Source: Epithemia pelagica (Eukaryota; Protista; Bacillariophyta). From it: DNA of 64,000 bases. Positions within the stretch are counted from its first letter, which is position 1. Each line of letters begins with the position of its first letter. A program made the position numbers and the translations under genes. This document shows, one piece after another, positions 29,700 to 64,000 of this stretch. Location of the stretch: contig OX337230.1 in NCBI GenBank assembly GCA_946965045.2, positions 3,844,001 to 3,908,000 on the forward strand, read 5' to 3'. Under the pieces are notes generated by a model, which saw only the letters and a list, made by a program, of their open reading frames with translations, did no database searches and was not told the origin of the DNA.

Positions 29700-30074
29700 T
29701 TGTATAATGCCGTTGATCGCACCAGACGATTCCAGTTGTTATGACGACAAGACTGTGAAAGGTACTGATGGATCGACACCACAGTCTGTCGCCTTTGACG
29801 ACCAGCGTCGCCAACCATTTGTCTCGCACAACAGCTGAGCCGTATTTGCATGACAGGGCACACGCGGATCTCCTTTTTATACTATTGGGGCCCGTCGCTT
29901 GTGGAATACTCTCGGATAGACAATTGAACAAGAACATCATCATTCTTCCTTTTTGAGTCAAACGCTATTTTGTTCTAGGTAAACTTATTCATGCGAGCGC
30001 CGGGGTGTCCTTCCCATTCATTAGTTTTGGCAGGATTGCAGCACTCTTTTTGGAGGGACACGATTCTTCACACA

Positions 30075-31065
30075 TCCCTCAAAATTTGGTCACAGTCTCT
30101 TACAACTCCACGTGTTGTACATAGATAAACAATTATATGGGAGGTGTATGGAGTCCAATCCCCTTTGGGTGGGTGTTTTTTTTGTTTCGGAAATGGACGT
30201 TTCCAATTCAGGAAAGCATCCTCTGGTCCAAACACACAAACACAACTCTTCTTCGACAAGGACCCATCACACGCGCCGATTCTTGGTGCGACTACGAAGA
30301 GACTTACATGCGGTGTATTGAGTAAAAGTACGTTGGTGCGTTCCGACAAGGTTGCTTCGAATTCCTCCGACTCCAATCCAAACAGCAAGCCACTCTTTTG
30401 GGGGTGTCCACGAAAGTATTCTTCTTTTGGTGGTTGCTGCTGCGGGTGGTGGTCGGTGTCATTGGTTTGGGTCGCAGGGGTACAAAGACGCAAGTACCAC
30501 CGGCCATCGGGACTCGGAGTCTGGTCGTTGTCGTTGTTTGTGGGCGAGTTGAGCTGCCACCACAAGTGGTGTGTATATTCGTGCACAAGGGCTTGGGCCA
30601 AGGCCGGATGGGCTTGGGAGGGTGCATATTGATTGGCCTGACGGTGTGTGACCGCGGCCTACATGGTCTCCACGACAAACCTCGGAGGATCCCAATCGGG
30701 AAAGCCTTGTTGTCGCGAAAGGGGTGTAAATTCATGCCACACGGCCGGGGCATCCAAACCGTCCAAGAGATGGGCCAAACGAATGGGAGATGACGACAAG
30801 GTCGATTTGTTCTGGTGGTGGTGATGATGGTTGTTGGGATTTCCGTTGGAAAACAAGCAGCATGACACGGTTCCTCTCAAAGGAGACGACGACCAACGTT
30901 GTGATGGCAGTGTCGTTTCTGCACTATACGACTACAAGAAGCAGCAGCCATTCCATCAGAGGACCACCCACAGGATCCAAACGACCGCAATGACGACCAG
31001 GTAGACGCCGAACCACTGCAAGAACGTGACAGTCCGACCGACGATAAAAAGGACGAACGAACCAT
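30075..31065 (-). pseudogene. Truncated, internally deleted inverted copy of the 5' part of the kynurenine aminotransferase-like gene
   Basis: Translations IRLAHLLDGLDAPAVWHEFTPL and ALVHEYTHHLW match the gene at 54808-57066; ends within its first intron. Confidence 0.8.
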
Positions 31066-31399
31066 GGTAGTGCGGCTTTTTGGGATTCTTCGATGCCACG
31101 GAGTCTTCTCTTTGTGTGGGTACGATCGAGAAAAAACGTTTTGATGTGTGGTGAGTCCCTTTTCACGTATCTAATGCGCGACCGGATTAGAAAACGATGA
31201 CGAGCTTCAGTCGCACATAGTCTGTCAACTCCACTCGCTCCCAACAAGAATTCTCGTCGTCATGACGACACAACCATCGCCCATCACAATGACCCAACCA
31301 CCCACCCAAAGATTTTAGAGGCATTGCAGAACCAACCCAATTTGGTGTTGCAACCATCTCTTATTCTTATTGAGACTGCCAATTCTCTCCTCTTTCGCA

Positions 31400-31837: not shown

Positions 31838-31914
31838 TATCGAAACATGGTGGACTATCGCCGGCTCTTTCTATACATTCGAAAGAGCCGGCGATAGTTC
31901 ACCATGTTTCGATA
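31838..31914. repeat. Fold-back inverted repeat, 34-bp arms with 9-nt loop, covering an ATG
   Basis: 31838-31871 is the reverse complement of 31881-31914 with one mismatch; loop TATACATTC. Confidence 0.9.
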
Positions 31915-32474
31915 CCTTCCAAAACGTGTATCCCACAGTCGCGTCAAGCACTGTTGTGCTCGTCTGTGTGTAAGCGAACACCACTAAGTCCACCATGGAA
32001 AGAGAGGACAATTATATGAAGGAGATGAAAAATCTCTTGCACGAAATGAACCAGAAGTTGAACCACGAAATGAACCAGAAATTCAACGAAATGAACCTCA
32101 AGACCCGTGAAACGCTGCAGAATGTTGCGTTTGGACAAGCGGGACTTATGCTCGCATTGGGATCGCCCTACACGGTGTGTCCGCCACCAACTTATCAAAA
32201 CAATCTGAGATTTTTTCTGAACGAATCGAAGCACAAGATGCTCGATTTGAAGGACAGAATGCTCAACTCCGATCCTGAGCCCACAGTTTTCCTTCGTGCG
32301 ATACATTCGAAAGAGCCGGCGATAGTCCACCATGTTTCGATACCTGAAAAAGCGTGTATCACACTGTCGCGTCAAGTACTGTTGTGCTCGTCCGTGTGTA
32401 AGCGGACACCGCTCCAAGTCCACCATCGGAATAGAGGACACTTGTGCAACGAAGCTTGCAAATGGTTTGAATGA
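31904..32474 (+). pseudogene. Leader-cassette family member (MFRYLPKRVSHSRVKHCCAR...) with a frameshift after the leader; coiled-coil body from ATG 31995
   Basis: The leader matches those at 32332, 52564, 57924 and 58509. The frame breaks at ~31985. The 3' end runs through the next cassette copy. Confidence 0.6.
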
Positions 32475-32615: not shown

Positions 32616-33344
<729 letters not shown>

Positions 33345-33797: not shown

Positions 33798-36614
33798 TCA
33801 GGAACTGTTCCATCGTTGTTTGTTGTATCCTAGCAGTGTGGCGGCACATTTTTCTTCGGAAGTCAATCTTCTCCAACTCTTGTCACAGGTCGGTGGTTCC
33901 TCATCCATGTCCCAAAGATGGGGAGTATATCCCAAAATCATGGCCGCTTCTTGCACATGGGGAGGAAGGTTCCGCCAGCTGTAGTCGTCATAGATTGGAG
34001 ACTCGGGTGCATCTTCTACGAGCATGGTGGCTCTTTGGGTTGTGCGTGGTTCTAGCGTTTTCGTGTTCGCGGGTCGACCCAAAAACTCGAGAATCCGTTG
34101 GGCCGTGTAACGGCCACTAAAAATGGCGGCTGGTACACTCCCTTCAAATTCCAACGAACTGGCATCTCCGGCAAAGCAGAGACTGCCATTCCATTCCGGT
34201 ATTTGCATGGCTTGACAATGATGATCGGATCCACCCATGGACAAACCGGCATAGGCACCTCGACAATACTCATCTTCTTCCCAACGTGTCACGTGGCAAT
34301 CCACACAGGCTTGTCGCAAATCACGTTGGAGGTTCATGGCCGTTTGCAAAAAGTCCAAGACGGCATTGCGAATCACCTCATCGGGTTTGTGTGTGGCCCA
34401 GACTCCTTGATCTCCCGCCAAAATGGCTTCGATACAAGGAACACCATCCTTGGCCCACAAATTGTCCAACAAGAGACAATTGCCCAGTGGATTATCAGTC
34501 GTATTAGTAAAGTCTTTCTTGGTATTATCGTCACTGTCCTTGGGTAGGAGCATCATTCCCAAAAAAGCTGGTTGTGTGGGCCAAAAAATGGCATCAAAGG
34601 TTAAAAACACTTTTTTGTATCGTCCCATGGTGAGACGTTCCAGGGCTTGTAATTTTTCCGTGCTTAGGGATGTCGTATTGGCAAACAAGGTGGCATGATT
34701 CTCCCGCAAACAACCGACTGGTATCGTGACGACACAGGCCTTGGCATATACCACCAAACCGGACTTGGTTTCGACACGGACATTGTACTTTGGTTGTGTT
34801 GTTTGCTTCTCATTGTCACTGCTGTCCTGATGGCTGGACTCGCCGGTAGGAGGATGGTGACCACCATTGGTGGTCATTGTTGGATGCTGCGGCAAATGTT
34901 GAATGCGAATGACTTCTTGATCGAGTCGAATGCAGTGTCGCACATCCGGTGTTGCCAAGGCTTGGACCACCTTGTGCATTCCCCCTTGGACGGTACAATG
35001 CGCTCCCACAAAATCACCATCTTGTTCAAATTCTTCATCGTCCCACAAGGGATCATCCTCCTCCTCATTGGAATTGTCCTTGTCGTCCTCGGAGGAGGAT
35101 GACGACGACGACGACGAATAATTGCGATTGCGATCGTCGTCCGGATCCAATCGGGTATTGCCATATTGGGCAATGGGAATGTCCTTCAAGCTAAATCCCT
35201 GCCAGTACGTCAGTAATTGTTGATAAAACAATGTCAGGGACCAAATGACTTGTCGTTGTTGTTGTTCTTGTTGGTGTGGTAGTAGGGCATCTTTGGAATC
35301 CATTCTTGGTGGTGGTAGTTGGAGGGGCAGACTGGCATTCCAGTGCTCCAAGGCACTTTGGAGACTGACATTATTGTTGGCGTGTTCGGCGAGTCCATTT
35401 TGAACCATGGTTTGGACTTGTTGATCGACCCGTCGCATAATTTGATAATGCCGACGAATCGAGGCACGAATCAAGTCATTGTTATTGTTGTTGTTTCGGT
35501 TCTTCTTCCTGTTGCTGTTGTGGGACTCTGAGTCTTGTTGTGGTGGTGGTTGTTTCATATACAGGAACGGCTGCGGTATTCGGAATGGTCCATCTTGTTC
35601 TTTGTGTGCCAATTGTGATGTTGGTGGCGGCGGTTCTAAAAAGAGGGCCAGGTTGTGGGTTCGATGCAAGACTGTGTAGGGTCGAGTCCAGGGATTGCCT
35701 CGTACGACCCGCCGCAAGTCTTGCGAGGCATTCAAATAGTCCAAGACGGGATTGCGAAGCAAGGTGGGAAATTGAGGATCGGTGACATGAAAGGCATCGT
35801 GCGGATCGGGCCAGGGTACGGGATCGACGCCATGCACCCACGCGGCACCCTGATCGATCCACAACACGACATTGCTAGTCTTGTTGTTCGAGGAATCTTC
35901 CTGGTTGTTGTTGTGGTTTTCGTCGTCGTGGTCCTCATGGTCCTCGTTCTCGTTCTTGTTGGTGGTGGGGACCATTGTTGGTTGGGGTACCGTATAGGGC
36001 GTAGTATGGACCCGTCCTCCAATTCGATTCCGCGCTTCCAAAATCAAAATATCCAGGTCACTGTCACTGTCGTCACTGGATTCTAGCAAACTCTTGGCAC
36101 ATTGCAAGCCACTGACACCCGCTCCCACAATCAACACGTCGACATATTCGACCCGATTGTCATTGTTGTTGTCATCATTGTCGTGTTGGTTGTCCTTGTC
36201 GTTGGTGGTCGTTTGGTCGTGGTGCTTGTCTCCATTCTTGTTGTTGTGGTTGTCATTGTGGTGAGTCTTTGCGTTGCGTCTACCGGTTTCGTCCGATGCT
36301 GTGATTGCTGTTGCTGGTTGTTCTTCGGGCATTGGCACCACCCACAATTGTTGTTGGTGTTGTTGTTGTTGTGGATTTCCTTTTTGTTGTCTTTTTCGTT
36401 GAGTGCAATATGGGCAGTCGCCCACACCAAAGGTCGTCACTCGTCGTATTCGATGGACTAGGACAAAGGATTCCGTCGTCTGGATCAATATTTCCAGTAC
36501 TAGAAACAAGAACAACAAGCTAGTACTACGGCGGCACAACCGAACACAAAGAATGATGGAAACGTGTGGCCCACAACAGAATGACAAAGAGCAGACAAAA
36601 AGTGGCAATCTCAA
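33798..36614 (-). CDS. Flavin-containing amine oxidase (polyamine oxidase/LSD1-like FAD fold), possible bipartite signal/plastid leader; start codon unresolved
   Basis: VLIVGAGVSGL, LEARNRIGGRVHT, IDQGAAWVHG, VTRWEED...GAY and LCFAGDA...GSVPAAIFSG. Hydrophobic stretch ending TTES-F. No in-frame ATG precedes it in the open frame. Confidence 0.85.
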   Translation of the reverse strand: MRLPLFVCSLSFCCGPHVSIILCVRLCRRSTSLLFLFLVLEILIQTTESFVLVHRIRRVTTFGVGDCPYCTQRKRQQKGNPQQQQHQQQLWVVPMPEEQPATAITASDETGRRNAKTHHNDNHNNKNGDKHHDQTTTNDKDNQHDNDDNNNDNRVEYVDVLIVGAGVSGLQCAKSLLESSDDSDSDLDILILEARNRIGGRVHTTPYTVPQPTMVPTTNKNENEDHEDHDDENHNNNQEDSSNNKTSNVVLWIDQGAAWVHGVDPVPWPDPHDAFHVTDPQFPTLLRNPVLDYLNASQDLRRVVRGNPWTRPYTVLHRTHNLALFLEPPPPTSQLAHKEQDGPFRIPQPFLYMKQPPPQQDSESHNSNRKKNRNNNNNNDLIRASIRRHYQIMRRVDQQVQTMVQNGLAEHANNNVSLQSALEHWNASLPLQLPPPRMDSKDALLPHQQEQQQRQVIWSLTLFYQQLLTYWQGFSLKDIPIAQYGNTRLDPDDDRNRNYSSSSSSSSSEDDKDNSNEEEDDPLWDDEEFEQDGDFVGAHCTVQGGMHKVVQALATPDVRHCIRLDQEVIRIQHLPQHPTMTTNGGHHPPTGESSHQDSSDNEKQTTQPKYNVRVETKSGLVVYAKACVVTIPVGCLRENHATLFANTTSLSTEKLQALERLTMGRYKKVFLTFDAIFWPTQPAFLGMMLLPKDSDDNTKKDFTNTTDNPLGNCLLLDNLWAKDGVPCIEAILAGDQGVWATHKPDEVIRNAVLDFLQTAMNLQRDLRQACVDCHVTRWEEDEYCRGAYAGLSMGGSDHHCQAMQIPEWNGSLCFAGDASSLEFEGSVPAAIFSGRYTAQRILEFLGRPANTKTLEPRTTQRATMLVEDAPESPIYDDYSWRNLPPHVQEAAMILGYTPHLWDMDEEPPTCDKSWRRLTSEEKCAATLLGYNKQRWNSS

Positions 36615-53267: not shown

Positions 53268-53815
53268 TACTCTCGGATAGACAATTGAGAAAGGAAATAA
53301 TCATTCTTCCTTTTTGAGTCAAACGCTATTTTGTACTAGGGAAACTTATTCATGCGAGCGCGGGGATGTCCTTCCCATTCATTAGTTTTGGCAGGAGTAC
53401 AGCGACTCTTTGGACAGACACGATTCTTTACACCTCCCTCGAAATTTTAGGCCTCAATGGAGTTCACACCTCCCTCGAAATTATAGGCTTCAATGGAGAT
53501 TGATGCTTGAAAGCGTTTCGTTGGATTCCATGGTGTTGTGTTTCTGTCACGACGCTGTCTCATTTTGGGATTGTACGGACTTCTCCAGTCGAAAATGTCT
53601 ATATCGTGGTCGGTTTGGATTTTGAGAGAGGATCCCGCTCTTTCATCTTGCCACGTGTTGTTCCAATCGCTGGGCCGCTTGTTGCAATGTCTCGTCCGTT
53701 TTACAAAAGGCCAATCAAATTAAATTTTGAGCCAAGGAAACATTGGGCTTCGAATAAAAGGCCAATGGTGGAATGGCCGTGACACCCACCGTTTCGGTCG
53801 GTCATCCAACAGGCA
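53268..53815. repeat. Inverted copy of 56890-57407 (aminotransferase 3' end plus downstream module)
   Basis: Examples: GGCCGTGACACCCACCGTTTCGGTC and TACTCTCGGATAGACAATTGA match the reverse complement of 56890-57407. Confidence 0.8.
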
Positions 53816-54400
53816 CGGTTGTGGTGGTTGGTTCCGTCTCTGTCGTCTTGCCCAATCGTTTGGGGGTGGCCTTGTTGTTGCCGTGCCAATCAAACAACAA
53901 CCTCCGTGCACATTGCAAGCCACTGACACCCGCTCTGTCAATCAACACGTTGACATACTCAACCGGATTGTTATTGTTGTTGTCGTTGTCATTGTCTTTG
54001 GTGGTCGTTTTGTCATGGTGGTTGTATCCATACTTGTTGTTGTTGCTGTTGGTATAGCCAATGTGATGATTGGTCTCTGCGTTACGTTTGCCGGCTTCGT
54101 CCGATGCTGTTGTTGCTACTGTTGCTTGTTCTCCGGGCATTGGCACCACCCACAATTGTTGTTGTTGTTGTGGATTGCCTTTTATTCTTCTTTGTCTTCT
54201 TTTTCGTGGAGTCCAAGAGGGGCAGTCGCCCACACCAAATGCCGTCGATCGTCGTGTTCGATGGACTAGGACAAAGGATTCCGTCGTCTGGATCAATCCT
54301 CCCAGTCCTACTAGAAACAACAACAACAACAAGTTACTAGTGCAAAGGCACAACCGAACACGAAGAATGGTGGAAACGTGTGACCGCCACACTCGAACGC
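53815..54400 (-). pseudogene. 5' fragment of the amine oxidase gene
   Basis: LIQTTESFVLVHR and VEYVNVLIDRAGVSGLQCA; breaks off after the first FAD motif. Confidence 0.8.
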
Positions 54401-54807
54401 AGACGAGAATTGGCCGTCTCTCAATGAGAATGGTTGCACAGGTTTCGAGTTTTGAGGCCAGACTTTTGGTCCCTCTCTTCTAATATCTTTTTGTCGTCGT
54501 CGTGTGTGATGGTTGTGTCGTCATCGGCCAAATCTTACCGACGAGAGAATTCTTGGGAGCACGGATTTTTGTTGTGTGGTCGACTGGCCATGTGCGACTG
54601 CAGGTTGTCATCGTTAAAATGTGACCTATCCACGACCCCAAAAATCAAGTCGCGCATTAGATGCGTGAAATGTCGAAACTCCAAGATCCAAAAGATACAC
54701 AAAAAGTTCTCTCTCGTCGTCCGTTGTTCTGTATTTTATCCGATTCTAGAGAAAGGAGACAAGAATCCGCGACATTGCAGCAGAATCCCCAACAGCCGCA
54801 ATACACC

Positions 54808-57066
54808 ATGGTTCGCTCGTCCTTTGTATCGTCGGGTTTCGGACTGTCACGTTCTTGCTGTGGCTCGGCGTCATTGTGGTCGTTTGGATCCTGCGGGTGG
54901 TCCTCTACTGGAATCATGGCTGCTGCTAGCAGTAGTAGTAGTGCCGAAAGGACACTGCGATCACAACGTTGGTCGTCTCCGTTGAGAGGAACCGTGTCGT
55001 CTTGCTCGTTTTCCACCGGCAATCCCAACAACGAAAACGACGACCACCACCAAAACAAATCGACTTCTTCTTCGTCGTCGTCGTCGTATCCCATTCGTTT
55101 GGCCCATCGCTTGGACGGGTTGGATGCCCCGACCGTCTGGCATGAATTTACGCCACTTTCCAAACAACACCAATCTATTAATTTGGGACAAGGCTTTCCC
55201 GATTGGGATCCACCCAGGTTTGTCGTGGAGGCCCTGCAAGCCGCCGTCACACACCGTCATGCCAATCAATATGCACCCTCCCAAGCCCATCCGGCCTTGG
55301 CGCAAGCCCTCGTGCACGAATATACACACCACTTGTGGAACAACGACAAGGACAGCGAAGACCATACGCCGATTCCGGACGCGGCCTGTTTCGACTTGGA
55401 TCCGACGCAACATGTGGCCACAACGGTTGGTTGTACGCAAGCCTTGTATTGTGCCTTGCAAGGATTGATCAATGTGGGAGACGAAGTCGTCTTGTTGGAA
55501 CCCGCCTTTGATATTTATCATTCGCAAGTGCGCATGGCTGGGGGTACCTGCGTCTTTGTCCCCCTGCGACCCCAACCACACATGACAACAACGATACCGA
55601 CCGCTAGTAGCAGCACTCGCACTCTCACTCGCAGCAACAACCCGGCGGCGGAAGTCAACGAATGGCATGCCAGTGACGTGTTTGGTTTGGATTTGGAGGA
55701 ATTTCAAGCCGCCTTGTCGGACCGCACCAAAGTCATTTTACTCAATACACCGCATGTAAGTCTCCTCACAATCATAATCGTACCAAGAACCGGCGCGTGT
55801 CCTGTGGTTCCTTGTTGTGTGTGTGTGTGTGTGTGTGCGTTTGGACCCGAGGACGCCGTTCGGAATTGGAACCGTAATGTTCCCAAACAGAATCACCCAC
55901 CCAAAGAACATTGGACTCCCTACACCTCTCCTGCAATGGAACATTCATGTGTATACATGTGTGGAGTTGTAAGAGACTGTGACAAACGTGCGAGAGAAAG
56001 AGAGAAAAAAAGAGAGAGACTCACGCTGCGTGTTTTTGTTCCACCACTCGTCCTCTCTCATGCTACTTGTGTATATACTCTATAGAATCCTACTGGTAAG
56101 GTGTTTTCTCGGGCCGAATTGCAAGGCATGGCGGATATTTTGCAACAACCCGAATATCAACATATTGTGGTCATTTCGGATGAAGTGTACGAACACATTG
56201 TCTTTGATCCCAACACACGACCCCACGTTTCCATGGCTACCATCCCGGGCATGTTTCATCGGACCTTGACCTTGAGTTCCTCTGGCAAAACGTACGTATA
56301 TAATCTGTCTCTCGTATGTATTGTTGTTGTTGTTGTTGTTGTGTGTGTGTTGGTCGTTGCATCCTCGAGTATATAGGGATAGGGATTGTGTGTGTGTGTT
56401 TTGTGGGTCTCACATCAGTTTCGAGAGGATGATGCTTTCCTGACGTGTCTTGTTGTTATTGGTCGTTCCTTTCTTTCTTTTTGTCTCTCACACTTGGCCA
56501 TTAGGTTTTCCTGTACGGGTTGGAAAGTGGGATGGGCGATTGGTCCTGCGCATTTGGTCCATGCTGTGACGGCCACCAATCAATGGATTACCTTTTCGGC
56601 TCCGACACCGACCCAAGATGCCATGGCGCAAGCCTTGCGTCAAGCACGAACCGAGCCCTTCCACGGCCATGCCACATATTTTGACTATGTGGCCGCAGAA
56701 TATCGTCGCAAACGCACCATTTTGCAAACGGCCTTGACCAACGCCGGCTTGACTCCCATTGTTCCCGATGGATCCTTTTTTGTCATGGCCGACACCTCTC
56801 AAGTCGAAATTCCCGAATCTTATTTGCATCACGTGACACGAGCCATGCCCCTTCGGACATTGGACCAACGACGCGTGGCTCCTCGCGATTGGGCCTGTTG
56901 TAGATGGATGACCGAAACGGTGGGTGTCACGGCCATTCCACCATCAGCCTTTTATTCGACGCCCAATGTTCCCTTGGCTCAAAATTTGATTCGATTGGCC
57001 TTTTGCAAAACGGACGAGACATTGCAAGAAGCGGCCCGGCGATTGGAACAACACTTTGGAAGATGA
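54808..57066 (+). CDS. Class I/II PLP aminotransferase, kynurenine aminotransferase/cysteine-S-conjugate beta-lyase-like; exons 54808-55755, 56086-56291, 56505-57066 (start could be 54661)
   Basis: VWHEFTPL, INLGQGFPD, LNTPH|NPTGKV, SDEVYE and SSGKT|FSCTGWKVGW (PLP lysine). Introns restore the frame (1716 nt). Confidence 0.92.
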
Positions 57067-57462
57067 GAGAGAGTGGGATCCTCTCTCAAAATCCGTGCCG
57101 ACGACGATAGGCATTTTCGATTGGAGAACTCTGCATATTCCCAAAGAGAGAGAGTTTTGATAGAAACACAACACCATGGAATCCAACGAAACGCTTTCAA
57201 GCATCAATCTCCATTGAGGCATATAGTTTGGAGGGAGGTGTGATGAATCGTGGCCCTCCAAAGAGTCGCTGTACTCCTGCCAAAACTAATGAATGGGAAG
57301 GACATCCCCGCGCTCGCATGAATAAGTTTACCTAGTACAAAATAGCGTTTGACTCGAAAAGGAAGAATGATGATTTTCTTGCTCAATTGTCTATCCGAGA
57401 GTATTCCACGACCGACGCCCCGGCCCAAGATGCAGAAACTACGAAGAGCCTCGCTGCTTGCT

Positions 57463-57924
57463 TCACTTGCTCTTGCTCTTAATAATCATATCTTGTGCTT
57501 CGATTTTGCTATCCTGGGCGTCAATTTTCCGGTCCTGGGACTCAAGCTTGTCATTTTGTGACTCAAAGCGTACATTTTGTGACTCAAAGCGTGCATCTTG
57601 TGCTTCGATTCGTTTCGAGAAACCCTCCGCCTGTCTCTGCAAATTGTTGGTGGACACATCGTGTAGAGCGATCATCAGTCCGATCATCAGTGTCCCCATT
57701 GTGACCGTAAGTCCCGCTAGTCCCAACGCAGTTTCGTTCATCTTCTGGTTCATTTCATTAAACAGACTTTTCATCTCAATCATGTTTTCGCGCAAACCAC
57801 TCTTCGTTGCATAATTGTCTTCTGTTCCGAGGGTGGACTTTGTGCGGTGTCCGCTTACAAACAGACGAGCACAACAGTGCTTGACGCGACTGTGGGATAT
57901 ACGCTTTGGAAGGTATCGAAACAT
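57463..57924 (-). CDS. Leader-cassette family protein (153 aa): basic leader, coiled coil, one TM helix, exact 7-residue repeats
   Basis: MFRYLPKRISHSRVKHCCAR; LGLAGLTVTMGTLMIGLMIAL; RIEAQDA RFESQNV RFESQND KLESQDR KIDAQDS KIEAQDM (21-bp DNA repeats). Confidence 0.65.
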   Translation of the reverse strand: MFRYLPKRISHSRVKHCCARLFVSGHRTKSTLGTEDNYATKSGLRENMIEMKSLFNEMNQKMNETALGLAGLTVTMGTLMIGLMIALHDVSTNNLQRQAEGFSKRIEAQDARFESQNVRFESQNDKLESQDRKIDAQDSKIEAQDMIIKSKSK

Positions 57925-58599
57925 GGTGGACTATCGCGGGTTCTTTCGAATGTATCGCAGGAAGGAAAACTGTGGGCTCACAAAAAATGTTCTCTGCGGG
58001 TGACGGGAAAGTGGCAAGTCTGAGGGAGAGAGGAGACGTCCACTTTTGCTGCGCCACGAAAAGACTGCAGGAGCTCCAGAGAGTCGAGAGTGTTTGGACG
58101 AAGAGGCGCCTGCACGCAAACCCAAAAGAACGGGAACAGTGAACAGTGAAGCTTGATATTTTTGATATTCCATTGTTGTGGTGTGCGTCGGGAGTTGTGT
58201 GCCCCGTCCGTCACCTCAGGATATGAATATAACTACTACTATATACTTTATACTGGTAGACATGGAGGAGGCGGTCTGTACAGTTTGAGTTATAGTGGAT
58301 CGTACGATTGTTGTGTGTTGAGGAGGCGGTCTGTACAGTTTGAGTTATAGTGGATCGTACGACTGTCAATCAATCTTGACTCTCGTGGCGCTTCAAAAGT
58401 GGCTCTCTCTCAGACTTGCCACTTTCCCGTCACCCGCAGAGAACATTTTTTGTGAGCCCACAGTTTTCCTTCCTGCGATACATTCGAAAGAACCCGCGAT
58501 AGTCCACCATGTTTCGATACCTTCCAAAGCGTATATGCCACAGTCGCGTCAAGCACTGTTGTGCTCGTCTGTTTGTAAGCGGACACCGCACAAAGTCCA
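57834..58599. repeat. Head-to-head inverted duplication of the promoter + leader cassette (arms 57834-58059 and 58383-58599), with a 43-bp direct repeat in the spacer
   Basis: The arms are near-identical over ~190 bp. GAGGAGGCGGTCTGTACAG...GATCGTACGA occurs at 58265-58307 and 58320-58362. Confidence 0.88.
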
Positions 58600-59399
58600 T
58601 GGAGGAACGAATTCCTGAAGAGGCCGTTCCTGAACAGGATTACATGATTGATGTAAGCTATGAGATGGAACAAGTTGAACTTGCTATGCAATCTGCAACG
58701 GAGGAAGGGCATTTTCTGGGGCGTCAGTGGTTGTTTCAAGGACGAGATTTGCGGGCGGAAGTTCGCTTGTCTTCACCCGAACGTCCGCTCGATGTCCACA
58801 CCTACTTACGAGGAAACAATTGCCAATCCTTCGCCCATAATCGCCATCCCTTTGTGGCTGCTTTATATTTGTTGCGAGAGGCGGACGGAGGATCAGCTGT
58901 TTACATTTCGGCTCCTTTTTTGACAGACACGTACTTTGTCGACGAGTTGTGTCATTATGCCAAGCCCATCGAGGACGGAGGACGCTCACTACAAGTCCAT
59001 CTTTTGCTAGGACCAGCGGTGTTCAATGAAACTGTGATCAGTCGTTTTATTGGCACAAGCCAAGTCCGTTTTGAATCTATTTCGCGTTTGAGCTTGAGGC
59101 GTTATGGGATTGACAACGCTGTACAAAATAGCGCGTACATGCACACCAAAGTATTAATCTCTACGGCCGGAACTATGATCGGCTCATACAATTATACGTT
59201 TGCTTCAAGATTCCGCCATCGTGAGGATGGCATCGTCATTGAAAATGGATCCATGGCCGACCGATATCGAGAACGCTTTCGGGACGTATGGAATATTTCT
59301 ACTGTCTACACGCCACGTCGACCTCCGGACGAACCGAACGATGAATATTCCAAGGAACCTGGTTTTGTGCCGGAAGCGAAACGAGCGAAATATTCTTAA
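58509..59399 (+). CDS. PLD-superfamily single-motif (Nuc/PLD6-like) putative nuclease fused to the leader cassette
   Basis: VYISAPFLTD, MHTKVLISTAGTMIGSYNYT (HxK...GSxN), REDGIVI and RERFRDVW. The canonical Asp of HxKxxxxD is replaced. Confidence 0.8.
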   Translation: MFRYLPKRICHSRVKHCCARLFVSGHRTKSMEERIPEEAVPEQDYMIDVSYEMEQVELAMQSATEEGHFLGRQWLFQGRDLRAEVRLSSPERPLDVHTYLRGNNCQSFAHNRHPFVAALYLLREADGGSAVYISAPFLTDTYFVDELCHYAKPIEDGGRSLQVHLLLGPAVFNETVISRFIGTSQVRFESISRLSLRRYGIDNAVQNSAYMHTKVLISTAGTMIGSYNYTFASRFRHREDGIVIENGSMADRYRERFRDVWNISTVYTPRRPPDEPNDEYSKEPGFVPEAKRAKYS

Positions 59400-59432
59400 T
59401 ATAATAAAATCGTCCGGCTTCTGATTTTTGTT

Positions 59433-59855
59433 TGTGCCTACGCCGCCGAGAATGGGCATTTGAAGGTGCTGCAGTGGGCAAGAGCGAACAGATGTCCATG
59501 GGACGAAGACATTTGTGCCTTTGCCGCCAGTAATGGGCATTTGGAGGCTTTGCAGTGGGCCAGAGCCAATGGTTGCCCGTGGACTGACTACACTTGTACC
59601 TGCGCCGCCGAGGGTGGGAATTTGGAGGTGCTAAAGTGGGCAAGAGCCAATGATTGTCCATGGAACTCGAGCACTTGTACCGAGGCCGCTAGGAATGGGC
59701 ATTTGGAGGTGTTGCAGTGGGCCAGAGCCAATGGTTGCCTGTGGAACGAAGACACTTGTACCTGGGTCGCCGAGAATGGGCATTTGAAGGTGCTGCAGTG
59801 GGCAAGAGCCAATGATTGTCGATGGTACCATCCATTGATCGCTCGGAGAATGTAG
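59433..59855 (+). pseudogene. Fragment of 25-aa-period ankyrin-like repeats (AAxNGHLEVLQWARANGCPW), truncated at both ends
   Basis: About five tandem repeats; no ATG; the repeat breaks off at ~59825. Confidence 0.8.
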
Positions 59856-61010
59856 GGTCATCCGTGTCCTGGTAATGTATCGCACCATGAAACCTAGTAT
59901 AGAGAGCCTCTATGTTCATCGTTTCAAGTTTCTCCGAAATCGAGGAAAAACGTTTCATATATTCTGAAATATACAGAATTAATGAGATGAATACAGTTTG
60001 GAACAAGTCAAACGATAACAGTTGTATTACCGCGCCTACCTTCACAACTATGCCACTGCATATAATTCTGTTGAAACAATTCACACGGTAGCTTCAGAAA
60101 TTTGAACGAGAAAAGCTTCAACCCACCACTCATGTCATACACAAACTGGGCTAAAGGAGTCCTCTTCACGCGAGGTAAATGGAACCTGGGATCCTTTTCT
60201 TGATTCTTGTACAGCCGTAACTCGATACCAATGGGGCGGAATATAAGATTTCGTCCGCAAACCGCACTTCCAGGATTGAGACCATCAGGTATGGCTGTCA
60301 CTGCATCCTTGTGATTTACGATTCTAAGGTGCATGATCCTACCCTGTCTCTCCAGTTCATAAAAGGCACGTGCGGTCTCAAGGTTCCCCCATCTTGGTGA
60401 GGCAAACGAGCAGCAGTAGATGGGCTTTGGAATTTCATCACCTGAAGTGGCACCAAGCCAGAAAGTGAAGAGCGAAGCAAGAGCACCTACATCACGATGC
60501 GTGATGAGTAAAAGAAGCGCACCCGTCCTCTCCTATTTCACGATCTTTTGAAACTTACCGCCAAGGCTATGCCCCGTCACGTGAATATTGAAACCAGGAT
60601 GAGTCTCCAGCAATTGGAGCAAATGGCCAAGGATGACATCATACTTGTGGGTGTTTTGCCCACGTGTGCTAAATAAATAATTGTAGAACCCGTGATGGAT
60701 GCCAATATGGGTTCCTTGTTTTATTGATGTATGGCAGCCTTCCAGTGGATTGGCAATTCGGGTTACAAACGCATCAGCATCAACACACCAATCAGTGATT
60801 GTCACAGAGCCACGGAATGTCACTCGAATGGACTTTTCTACCCTGTGAAGTCCAACACAACAATGCTGAGGTTTCCATACGTATCGCAACAAATTTCAAA
60901 TGAGGATTGCCATATAGGACACTTACTTGTCGACCGAAATACAGTACACGAGACTATTTTGCTCATTCTCATCATCAAAGACTACGATCATTTGTGCATC
61001 ACGTAGCCTG
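59689..61010 (-). CDS. Class 3 lipase (alpha/beta hydrolase), multi-exon; 5' end not resolved
   Basis: VTFRGS, IHHGFYNYL, VTGHSLG|GALASLF (nucleophile at 60574-60560), SFASPRWGN, IVNHKDAVTAIP and WHSCE; GT-AG junctions at 60558 and 60924. Confidence 0.75.
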
Positions 61011-61559
61011 GGTTTGTATACAAATGAGTCATACAGACCAAAGAATATGTCAATAGAATGGACGGTGAGAGTCACATGATATGAAAAACATATTTTTGGT
61101 TTGTATGAACAGTTCAGGAATGAGAAAGGATTTTTCAATAATGGAGGAATGATGATAGTGCTTTATGATGCCGCCATTCTACAAAAGGTTTCGGTAGTGA
61201 ATCATGGTGTTTCAGAAGAAATATAACAGCAGAGGCAGGCATGGCAAGAATATTAAAAAGTCCAACAAGTTTACCCCATGGGACATGGCATGGGACATGG
61301 ATTATGATGATGGTGTCAAGAATGGATATCATGAACGTCTTTTTATGAGAAATCGGGAGTTGAATTTTGGACCACAATTTGTTTTCTCATTTAGATATGA
61401 AAGAAGGGAAGGAGAAACTTAAGTTTCATAATGGAAAACCCATTATGCCTTTGTTGTGTGTGCAATGTGTGTGGGTGTTTCGCCTTGCCGTTCCACAAAA
61501 GACCCAATTTGCATTGCCCGCCCCCATTAAAGATGTTTATGCTTTTTCCAAATGAATCT

Positions 61560-63962
61560 CTATCGTATCCTCGGTGAATGTTTACAAACTTCAATATTCC
61601 ATCCTTCTTCGATTTTCTTCCGTTTTTGTTCAACATGTTTACGGCTATGATGATCGTACTCGTCCTCGTTATCATCATGAAAAGTCTGCCAATCCACACA
61701 GGCTTGTCGCAAATCACGTTGGAGGTTCATGGCCGTTTGCAAAAAGTCCAAGACGGCATTGCGAATCACCTCATCGGGTTTGTGTGTGGCCCAGACTCCT
61801 TGATCTCCCGCCAAAATGGCTTCGATACAAGGAACACCATCCTTGGCCCACAAATTGTCCAACAAGAGACAATTGCCCAGTGGATTATCAGTCGTATTAG
61901 TAAAGTCCTTCTTGGTATTATCGTCACTGTCCTTGGGTGGGAGCATCATTCCCAAAAAGGCTGGTTGTGTCGGCCAAAAAATGTCATCAAAGGTTAAAAA
62001 CACTTTTTTGTATCGCCCCATGGTGAGACGTTCCAGGGCTTGTAATTTTTCCGTGCTTAGGGATGTCGTATTGGCAAACAAGGTGGCATGATTCTCCCGC
62101 AAACAACCCACCGGGATGGTCACGACACAGGCCTTGGCATACACCACCAAATCGGACTTGGTTTCGACACGGACATTGTACTTTGAATGTGTTGTTTGCT
62201 TCTCATTGTCACTGTTGTCCTTGTTTACATTATCCGTAGGAATAAGATTGGTCTCACCGGTAATAGATGAAGGAGGAGAATGGTGACCACCATTGGTGGT
62301 CGTTGTTGGATGCTGCTGTTGCAAATGTTGAATGCGAATGACTTCTTGGTCGAGTCGAATGCAGTGTCGCACATTCGGTGTCGCCAAGGCTTGGACCACC
62401 TTGTGCATTCCCCCTTGGACGGTACAATGCGCTCCCACAAAATCACCATCTTGTTCAAATTCTTCATCGTCCCACAAGGGATCATCCTCCTCCTCATTGG
62501 AATTGTCCTTGTCGTCCTCGGAGGAGGATGACGACGACGACGACGAATAATTGCGATTGCGATCGTCGTCCGGATCCAATCGGGTATTGCCATATTGGGC
62601 AATGGGAATGTCCTTCAAGCTAAATCCCTGCCAGTACGTCAGTAATTGTTGATAAAACAATGTCAGGGACCAAATGACTTGTCGTTGTTGTTGTTCTTGT
62701 TGTTCTTGTTGGTGTGGTAGTAGGGTATCTTTGGAATCCATTCTTGGTGGTGGTGGTAGTTGGAGGGGCAAACTGGCATTCCAGTGCTCCAAGGCACTTT
62801 GGAGACTGACATTATTGTTGGCGTGTTCGGCGAGTCCATTTTGAACCATGGTTTGGACTTGTTGATCGACCCGTCGCATAATTTGATAATGCCGTCGAAT
62901 CGAGGCACGAATCAAGTCATTGTTATTGTTGGTGGTGGTGGACTCTGAGTCGTGTGGTTGTTGTGGTGGTTGTTTGGTATACAGGAACGGCTGCGGTATT
63001 CGGAATGGTGGCTCTTCTCCGTCTTGTTGGGCGGATGTTGGTGGCGGCTGTTCTAAAAAGAGGGCCAGGTTGTGGGTTCGATGCAAGACTGTGTAGGGTC
63101 GAGTCCAGGGATTGCCTCGTACGACCCGCTTCAAGTCGTCTTGCGCATTCAAATAGTCCAAGACGGGATTGCGAAGCAAGGTGGGAAACCGAGGATCGGT
63201 GACATGAAAGGCATCGTGCGGATCGGGCCAGGGTACGGGATCGACGCCATGGACCCACGCGGCACCCTGATCGATCCACAACACGACATTGCTAGTCTTG
63301 TTGTTGGAGGGATCTTCCTGGTTGTTGTTGTGGTTTTCGTCGTCGTGGTCCTCATGGTCCTCGTTCTCATTGTATTTGTTGTCAGTGGGGACCATTTTTG
63401 TTTGTGGGGGTACCGTATAGGGCGTAGTATGGACCCGTCCTCCAATGCGATTCCGCGCTTCCAAAATCAACACATTCAAGTCACTGTCATCACTGGATTC
63501 TAGCAAACTCTTGGCACATTGCAAGCCACTGACACCCGCTCCCACAATCAACACGTCGACATATTCGACCGGATTGTTGTTGTCGTTGTCGTCTTGGCTG
63601 TCCTTGTCGTTGGTGGTCGTTTGGTCATGGTGCTTGTCTCCATTCTTGTTGTTGTGGTTGTCATTGTGGTGAGTCTTTGCGTTACGTATACCGGTTTCGT
63701 CCGATGTTGATGTTTCTGTTGCTGGTTGTTCTTCGGGCATTGGCACCACCCACAATTGTTGTTGGTGTTGTTCTTGTTGTGGATTTCCTGTTTGTTGTCT
63801 TTTTCGTTGAGTGCAATATGGGCAGTCGCCCACACCAAAGGTCGTCGATCGTCGTATTCGATGGACTAGGACAAAGGATTCCGTCGTCTGGATCAATAAT
63901 GCTCCCAGTACTACTAGAAACAACCAGAACACCAACACGCTGCTAGTACTACAGCGGCACAA
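61560..63962 (-). pseudogene. Second long amine oxidase copy, lacking the C-terminal ~166 codons and ending in an unrelated 43-codon tail; 5' end at the window edge
   Basis: Closely similar to 34297-36580 until 61690 (ACVD|W versus ACVD|CHVTRW). The final FAGD/GA..SG FAD motif is absent. Confidence 0.8.
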
Positions 63963-64000
63963 CCGAACACAAAGAATGATGGAAACGTGTGGCCCACAAC

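Follow-up and report, generated by a model that had tools for sequence, protein, structure and literature searches.

How does a nuclease-type gene that is complete in itself come to carry a foreign N-terminal leader, and does that leader turn its product into a mitochondrial enzyme? The question is raised by an open reading frame at 58509-59399 (+) in a 64,000-nucleotide stretch of Epithemia pelagica DNA, here called the window. The initial annotation read this frame as a single-motif phospholipase D (PLD) nuclease of the Nuc/Zucchini type that had acquired a mitochondrial-type leader, and it proposed that two start codons could yield a mitochondrial and a nuclear isoform. The data are most compatible with a model, to which we give a probability of roughly 0.65, in which the fusion is a very young chimeric duplicate made by segmental duplication. 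The fused copy is most likely a neutral or decaying by-product of such duplication in a fast-rearranging region.

The chimeric reading frame is intronless and holds 296 open codons, with an in-frame TAG located 9 nt 5' of its first ATG. It consists of a captured basic leader of 30 codons (58509-58598, +) and a complete ancestral PLD frame of 266 aa (58599-59399, +), which begins at a second in-frame ATG (58599-58601; protein start MEERIPEE) and matches P0001/L001 at 99%. The two starts lie 90 nt apart, so the leader and the PLD gene are joined in frame. The PLD fold domain, as delimited by an AlphaFold model and structure matches, spans residues 60-240 of the 266-aa protein (58776-59318, +). 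The frame contains one HxK...GSxN motif, which reads HTK-x10-GSYN (59142-59192, +), with HTK at residues 212-214 (59142-59150) and GSYN at residues 225-228 (59181-59192). The C-terminus reads ...EAKRAKYS and includes KRAK (59379-59390, +), an NLS-like K[KR]x[KR] motif. Hydropathy gives no sign of a TM segment: in the 296-aa protein, no 19-mer exceeds a Kyte-Doolittle value of 1.17. As such, four features described at the outset were borne out: the single catalytic motif (now joined by a Pfam PLDc_2 match and a PLD fold), the leader set directly ahead of the second ATG at 58599, to which the breakpoint maps, the basic C-terminus and the lack of an evident TM anchor.

The leader has its source next door. 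An inverted repeat of 197 nt, at 99% identity, pairs 57834-58030 (left arm, -) with 58403-58599 (right arm, +). The right arm, composed of 106 nt of cassette 5' region and the leader, ends on 58599, the A of the second ATG, and the left arm carries the same cassette at the head of a neighbouring gene. Between the arms lies a 372-nt spacer (58031-58402), a common divergent upstream region that includes a 47-nt direct repeat present twice at 58265-58366. The neighbouring donor-type gene (P0022; 57463-57924, -) encodes an orphan protein of 153 aa with the leader, a coiled coil, one TM segment and AQD/Q-rich repeats, and its start at 57924(-) is the same as the captured leader except for S10C. Elsewhere in the window, the leader also heads the ORFs at 32332(+) and 52564(+), and a frameshifted copy lies at 31904. 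The inverted repeat is a head-to-head promoter and leader cassette of an orphan coiled-coil/TM gene family. A word-index search found this family nowhere outside assembly ERZ21939226, where it occurs on only two contigs, and a language-model search of the Atlas returned look-alikes at chance level (0.80). At another locus, L008, the same palindrome bears complete family genes on both arms, which shows the cassette in its state before the PLD segment arrived. In the cassette copy at 31904-32035, the leader has lost 2 nt close to its end and is out of frame, and the family ORF at 31995-32474 begins at an ATG of its own directly behind the position of this frameshifted leader.

The PLD gene, in turn, has a leaderless parent of 266 aa, found at L001 (ctg1309l) with an allele at L013 (ctg1313l). 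L001:6001-9080 aligns with the window at 99.3% identity, and this alignment begins precisely at 58599 and extends to 61690. Upstream of 58599 no similarity to L001 was found, the sequences being unrelated there. In a three-sequence alignment, the window follows the cassette as far as ...AAGTCC(A) and the parent from (A)TGGAGG... onwards, with a single shared A. The segment duplicated from the parent locus (58599-61690, +) holds the PLD gene, an ankyrin fragment, a 108-aa ORF and Lipase_3 fragments. The proposal that the leader had been acquired is thereby confirmed at the level of the exact junction: the breakpoint sits at the PLD gene's own ATG, the donor cassette lies alongside and a leaderless parent exists elsewhere.

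The fusion is present in three copies on two contigs, each with copy-specific substitutions: the window copy (copy A), L009 and L010 (copy B). SNPs at 58537, 58821, 59118 and 59147 distinguish copy A from the others. L009 (ctg1208l) is colinear with the window over 53268-60718 at 99.3-99.7% and is probably its other haplotype. L010 is a tandem copy located ~14 kb downstream of copy A, ~8.9 kb beyond the end of the window, and carries HTE (K214E) through an A>G change at the equivalent of 59148. The fused ORF is intact in the window copy and in L009. In L010 the homology to the parent continues for at least 6.8 kb, which indicates a segmental duplication and not an ORF-sized insertion.

These data suggest the following course of events. 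A segmental duplication of at least 3 kb would have carried the complete intronless PLD gene away from its leaderless parent (L001/L013). Its left end would have met codon 30 in the cassette's right-hand gene, with a single nt of microhomology, so that the junction falls on the A of the PLD ATG and, by chance, in frame, which would have created the 296-aa leader-PLD ORF. Subsequently, the fused unit would have been copied again, giving rise to L009 (as an allele or a copy) and to the tandem copy B. If the cassette promoter fires, ribosomes would be expected to start at the first AUG and to produce a PLD with a basic, presequence-like N-terminus.

Whether such a transcript occurs was approached with contigs from four RNA-labelled runs, aligned to 58100-59450; these come from environmental samples or a near relative and not from the sequenced strain, and rare transcripts or variants, as well as strains with the fusion, can be missed. 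Contigs X1, X3 and X5, from three of the runs, stop fitting at 58599, and their overhangs correspond to L001:5971-6000, the 5'UTR of the parent. X5, from a polyA metatranscriptome, has otherwise 1 differing letter in 336 (~99.7% identity). Among the environmental and near-relative contigs of the four runs, none enters the leader or the spacer. Over the interval from 58599 to 59397/59421, the RNA contigs and the DNA are colinear, with no sign of splice joints. In nature, therefore, it is the leaderless parental form of the PLD gene that is transcribed.

The same contigs help to place the 3' end of the gene. An AATAAA at 59403 is followed, 13 nt further on, by position 59421, at which the contigs from two of the runs part from the window (59403-59421, +); in RNA contigs from other strains, the agreement ends at 59397-59399 or at 59421. 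Beyond the PLD stop codon (TAA in the window, TGA in the parent), with nothing else in between, the same frame continues as an ankyrin ORF of ~150 aa that has no ATG and is built of 81-nt units at 59432-59855 (region 59397-59858). It resembles a piece of an ankyrin gene that lost its 5' part and was joined at ~59421. As a readthrough extension of the PLD protein it was rejected, since homologues end at the same stop and RNA contigs of other strains leave at or just after it.

What kind of PLD has been captured? The ORF matches PF13091 (PLDc_2) at E 5.5e-7 and 29.9 bits, against a gathering cutoff of 27, and its homologues also carry this domain. In a single-sequence search, the best match among solved proteins is Salmonella Nuc (1byr; E 0.003), followed by PLD6/MitoPLD (E 0.09-0.17), and a family profile run against the PDB gives Zucchini (E 0.0048) and Nuc (E 0.0051), both weak. 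The active-site His, Lys, Ser and Asn of Nuc, and a later Glu, align with the window protein. Throughout the diatom family, Ser/Thr stands in place of the Asp of HxK(x)4D, and the spacer has one residue fewer; the H, G, S and N of the motif are invariant, and the Lys is variable and lost in some relatives. The AlphaFold model, built on 19 homologues, reaches a pLDDT of 76 and a pTM of 0.80. Compared with solved structures by VIA-align, it scores Z 15.9 for FAM83, 14.1 for Nuc (rmsd 2.6 over 146/152 residues), 13.9 for NucT, ~13 for PLD3/4 and 12.2-12.5 for Zucchini, where the FAM83 and Nuc values, within ~2 of each other, are effectively tied. A Foldseek comparison, as the initial annotation had suggested, likewise returned FAM83, Nuc, NucT and Zucchini and agrees with VIA-align on a PLD fold.

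Single-motif PLDs such as Nuc and PLD6/Zucchini are homodimeric nucleases, and Zucchini is associated with mitochondria in piRNA processing via a TM anchor. By analogy, the window PLD would act as a homodimer with one active site. Judged from its sequence, it is a Nuc-like single-HKD protein and not a PLD6 orthologue. Orthology to PLD6 was discarded, as the family is equidistant from Nuc and Zucchini, has no anchor and has an acidic ancestral N-terminus. The label Nuc/Zucchini-like thus holds in so far as these two are the nearest solved sequence relatives, but does not extend to PLD6 orthology, with Zucchini and Nuc matched equally weakly. The bacterial defence PLDs DrmC and DpdK were also set aside, as they show generic PLD similarity only (E 1e-5 to 2e-3, far under the curated cutoffs). 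No papers came up in a literature search for Zucchini and phospholipase D in diatoms.

The comparison with known systems sharpens this picture. With Nuc (plasmid pKM101) and Helicobacter pylori NucT, the protein shares one HKD-type motif and a domain of ~150-180 aa. It differs in being a diatom protein of 266 aa with only 21% identity, predicted to be a nuclease from sequence and fold, in adding an acidic N-terminal region of ~60 aa and a basic C-terminal tail while having no secretion signal, and in the replaced Asp and shortened spacing of its motif. With PLD6/Zucchini/MitoPLD (4ggj, 4gel) it has in common the single-HKD PLD fold and a weak sequence match (E 0.005), whereas the ancestral diatom protein has no membrane anchor and combines an acidic N-terminus with an NLS-like C-terminus. 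Any mitochondrial link of the window PLD would therefore have to come only from the newly captured leader. The top fold matches, the DUF1669 pseudo-PLD domains of FAM83 (4urj, 5lzk; Z 15-16), extend to part of that domain's N-terminal extension, but FAM83 is without the catalytic His, while the window protein, at 15-17% identity, keeps the His, the Lys and GSxN.

Relatives of the PLD gene occur in other diatoms (Amphora, Licmophora) and in many marine metagenome and transcriptome contigs. An exhaustive profile search yielded 66 clusters at E<=1e-10, followed by a gap to generic two-HKD enzymes, with named members from diatoms only, and this small PLD-fold family appears to be diatom-associated. 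In all 19 diatom homologues, the protein opens at the position of the second ATG and has an acidic N-terminus (MEE/MED...), and neither these homologues nor the parent copy carry the leader. Near the C-terminus, K[KR]x[KR] is found in 14/18 family sequences that have a C-terminus, which, set against the known monopartite NLS consensus, suggests a nuclear location. With its acidic N-terminus, its Nuc-like HKD domain and this conserved motif, the family is probably one of nuclear nucleases. In the profile search, the match in some members starts 40-130 aa into the protein; Pfam detected no foreign domain in ten of these, and many of the late-starting members look like upstream read-through by ORF callers. 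One candidate N-terminal fusion, P0164 (378 aa), was dropped because its allele L024, with identical upstream DNA, is called at 269 aa.

Comparison with a 95.5%-identical relative gives the PLD gene a dN/dS of 0.23-0.30 at a dS of 0.10, which marks the family as a working gene. Within the genome, the picture is different: across five copies there are 7 nonsynonymous changes against 1 synonymous change, one of the former being the K214E of copy B, although these numbers are small. For such a split, P is ~0.02 with omega unchanged at 0.25, compared with 0.42 under neutrality. The reading of the fused copy as a by-product follows from these amino-acid changes, among them the lost catalytic Lys of copy B, together with the finding that RNA shows the parent transcript only. 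Several points count against a young duplicate without function. The fusion is in frame, its ORF is intact in the window copy and L009, the context of the first ATG is good and the cassette presumably has an active promoter. Furthermore, a set of seven changes is small, and an excess of nonsynonymous ones is normal among polymorphisms.

In a second reading, only a promoter was captured: the cassette drives transcription, the normal 266-aa protein is made and the leader serves as 5'UTR or as a short upstream frame. The frameshifted cassette copy at 31904, behind which the downstream gene has its own ATG, is in line with such a use of the cassette. So are the pN/pS of the leader (0.65-0.8 among paralogues), its changes being spread evenly over codon positions, and the choice of the 266-aa model by gene callers for all copies. 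However, the leader ATG is in frame with the PLD gene, so that it forms no separate uORF, and it has an A at -3, whereas the PLD ATG now has a T there, having lost its native G. This stronger first-ATG context implies that an mRNA driven by the cassette would give mainly the long form. In addition, no RNA contig from the fused copy was found in the four runs, and we consider this reading unlikely.

A third reading, which we hold to be rather improbable, is that of a functional new gene, in which the leader works as a mitochondrial presequence and sends a Nuc/Zucchini-like nuclease to mitochondria, possibly with a nuclear isoform made from the second ATG. The leader itself lends this some colour: its 30 aa include 8 Lys/Arg, no Asp/Glu (net +8), 3 His and 3 Cys, and it has Arg/Ser content and R-x-F/R-x motifs. 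In the divergent paralogue P0025, the N-terminus is different yet equally basic, so that the character is kept, and the in-frame fusion, the strong first-ATG context and the ORF intact in two of three copies point the same way. By contrast, the maximal hydrophobic moment of the leader over 18 residues, 0.46, is reached by 33% of shuffles, and across tests a fraction of 0.29-0.61 of shuffles reaches the observed moment; for the donor family, moreover, no relatives outside this assembly were found. The description "presequence-like" seems fair, and it would be the composition alone that earns the leader the name "mitochondrial". In this sense, the mitochondrial-type leader of the initial annotation stands as a basic, hydroxylated and acid-free peptide, but gains nothing from its hydrophobic moment or from its orphan donor family. 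Further evidence against a functional gene is that no RNA contig crosses the junction, that copy B has lost the catalytic Lys, that the NLS-like C-terminal motif has been kept and that the fusion, at <1% divergence, is so young that no selection is visible. The two proposed isoforms find no support: all RNA contigs that reach the start carry the 5'UTR of the parent, and the strong first AUG speaks against leaky scanning to a second start. An assembly artefact, finally, in which the leader-PLD junction is a mis-join of repeats, is very improbable, because, even though the region is rich in near-identical repeats and palindromes and all junction DNA evidence comes from one assembly (ERZ21939226, with the window protein P0022 on its ctg1299l), the identical junction was assembled three times on two contigs with copy-specific substitutions, and in four runs of the likely source organism 85-90% of the words sampled from 58380-59420 are present, a figure that by itself does not single out the junction.

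Read in this way, as a very young chimera, the locus offers a clean and datable case of a eukaryotic gene gaining a promoter and an N-terminal peptide in one step, with both parents, the exact breakpoint and three descendant copies visible at <1% divergence. Presequences taken over from other nuclear genes, by duplication or exon shuffling, have precedents, to which this locus adds a very young example. In plants, genes transferred from mitochondria include cases with a presequence derived from a chaperonin gene (PMC8317393), and the prepeptide of hominid Par17 is another N-terminal presequence acquisition (PMC2031878). These cases are alike in that the 5' region and N-terminal peptide of one gene were set in frame before another complete gene by DNA rearrangement. 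The window locus differs in that the recipient PLD gene is not organelle-derived, the donor peptide is an orphan and the event is <1% divergence old. By itself, the locus presents neither a new mitochondrial nuclease nor a new targeting system; it does define a small PLD-fold family with a conserved NLS-like tail.

The surroundings of PLD genes in related genomes raise a wider question. In Tara/JGI DNA contigs (L014-L022), relatives at 94-95% nucleotide identity (dS 0.10) share homology with L001/L013 only from ~-80 to the stop codon (window 58520-59401), and their flanks and neighbouring genes are unrelated. Specifically, a TrmO gene follows the PLD gene 49 nt downstream in L014-L022, in the place taken by the ankyrin fragment at the window locus. 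RNA contigs from near-identical strains show a like confinement to the ORF, as they part from the window just past the stop codon or at 59421. A search of ERZ21939226 retrieved no near-identical match to this PLD-flanking TrmO gene, and the best match outside its own cluster is 58%. In a second PLD subfamily, from another diatom assembly, L024 and L012 are 93.7% identical, with homology from -3 to ~10 nt past the stop. The pattern, seen in two subfamilies and two diatom genomes, suggests that the PLD ORF either moves or sits in fast-rearranging DNA. One could go further and propose that PLD genes are movable, ORF-sized modules that repeatedly land behind the promoters and N-terminal, often mitochondrial, presequences of other genes. 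This proposal, which we think doubtful, builds on the observation that close relatives share only the ORF and at most ~80 nt of 5' flank in otherwise unrelated contexts. If such captures were independent and repeated, they would speak for a mechanism of capture, or for selection that favours sending the nuclease into mitochondria, for instance as a selfish or organelle-DNA-eliminating nuclease.

Several further observations concern the PLD genes and their genomic neighbourhood. In the same assembly, L011:5900-6675 (ctg1288l) holds a second PLD paralogue, 44% identical, with an N-terminal frameshift and HSN in place of HSK, which is probably decaying; P0138, on another contig and probably an allele of it, also has HSN. 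A marine metagenome contig (L002:5885-6558) contains an 85%-identical relative that is a pseudogene: the start position lacks an ATG, the frame shifts after GRQWLF and a stop comes too early, after ...ADRY. HSP70 lies downstream, so the context is again a different one. About 750 bp upstream of the parent PLD gene, L001:2192-5256 (-) marks a 3.6-kb insertion polymorphism that is absent from the allele L013. It encodes an RT-like ORF of 686 aa, for which Pfam gave no hit, and behind it an ORF of 335 aa that matches GIY-YIG weakly (E 4.9e-4); the insertion is possibly a Penelope-like retroelement. The window also contains large direct and inverted segmental repeats at 93-98% identity (61687-64000 against 34294-36577, and 53268-57417 against 29893-31089), one of which cuts the PLD-bearing duplication at 61690. 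Finally, a long (CAA)n microsatellite at 33094-33267, within the ORF at 32616-33344, encodes a poly-Asn run of >55 residues.
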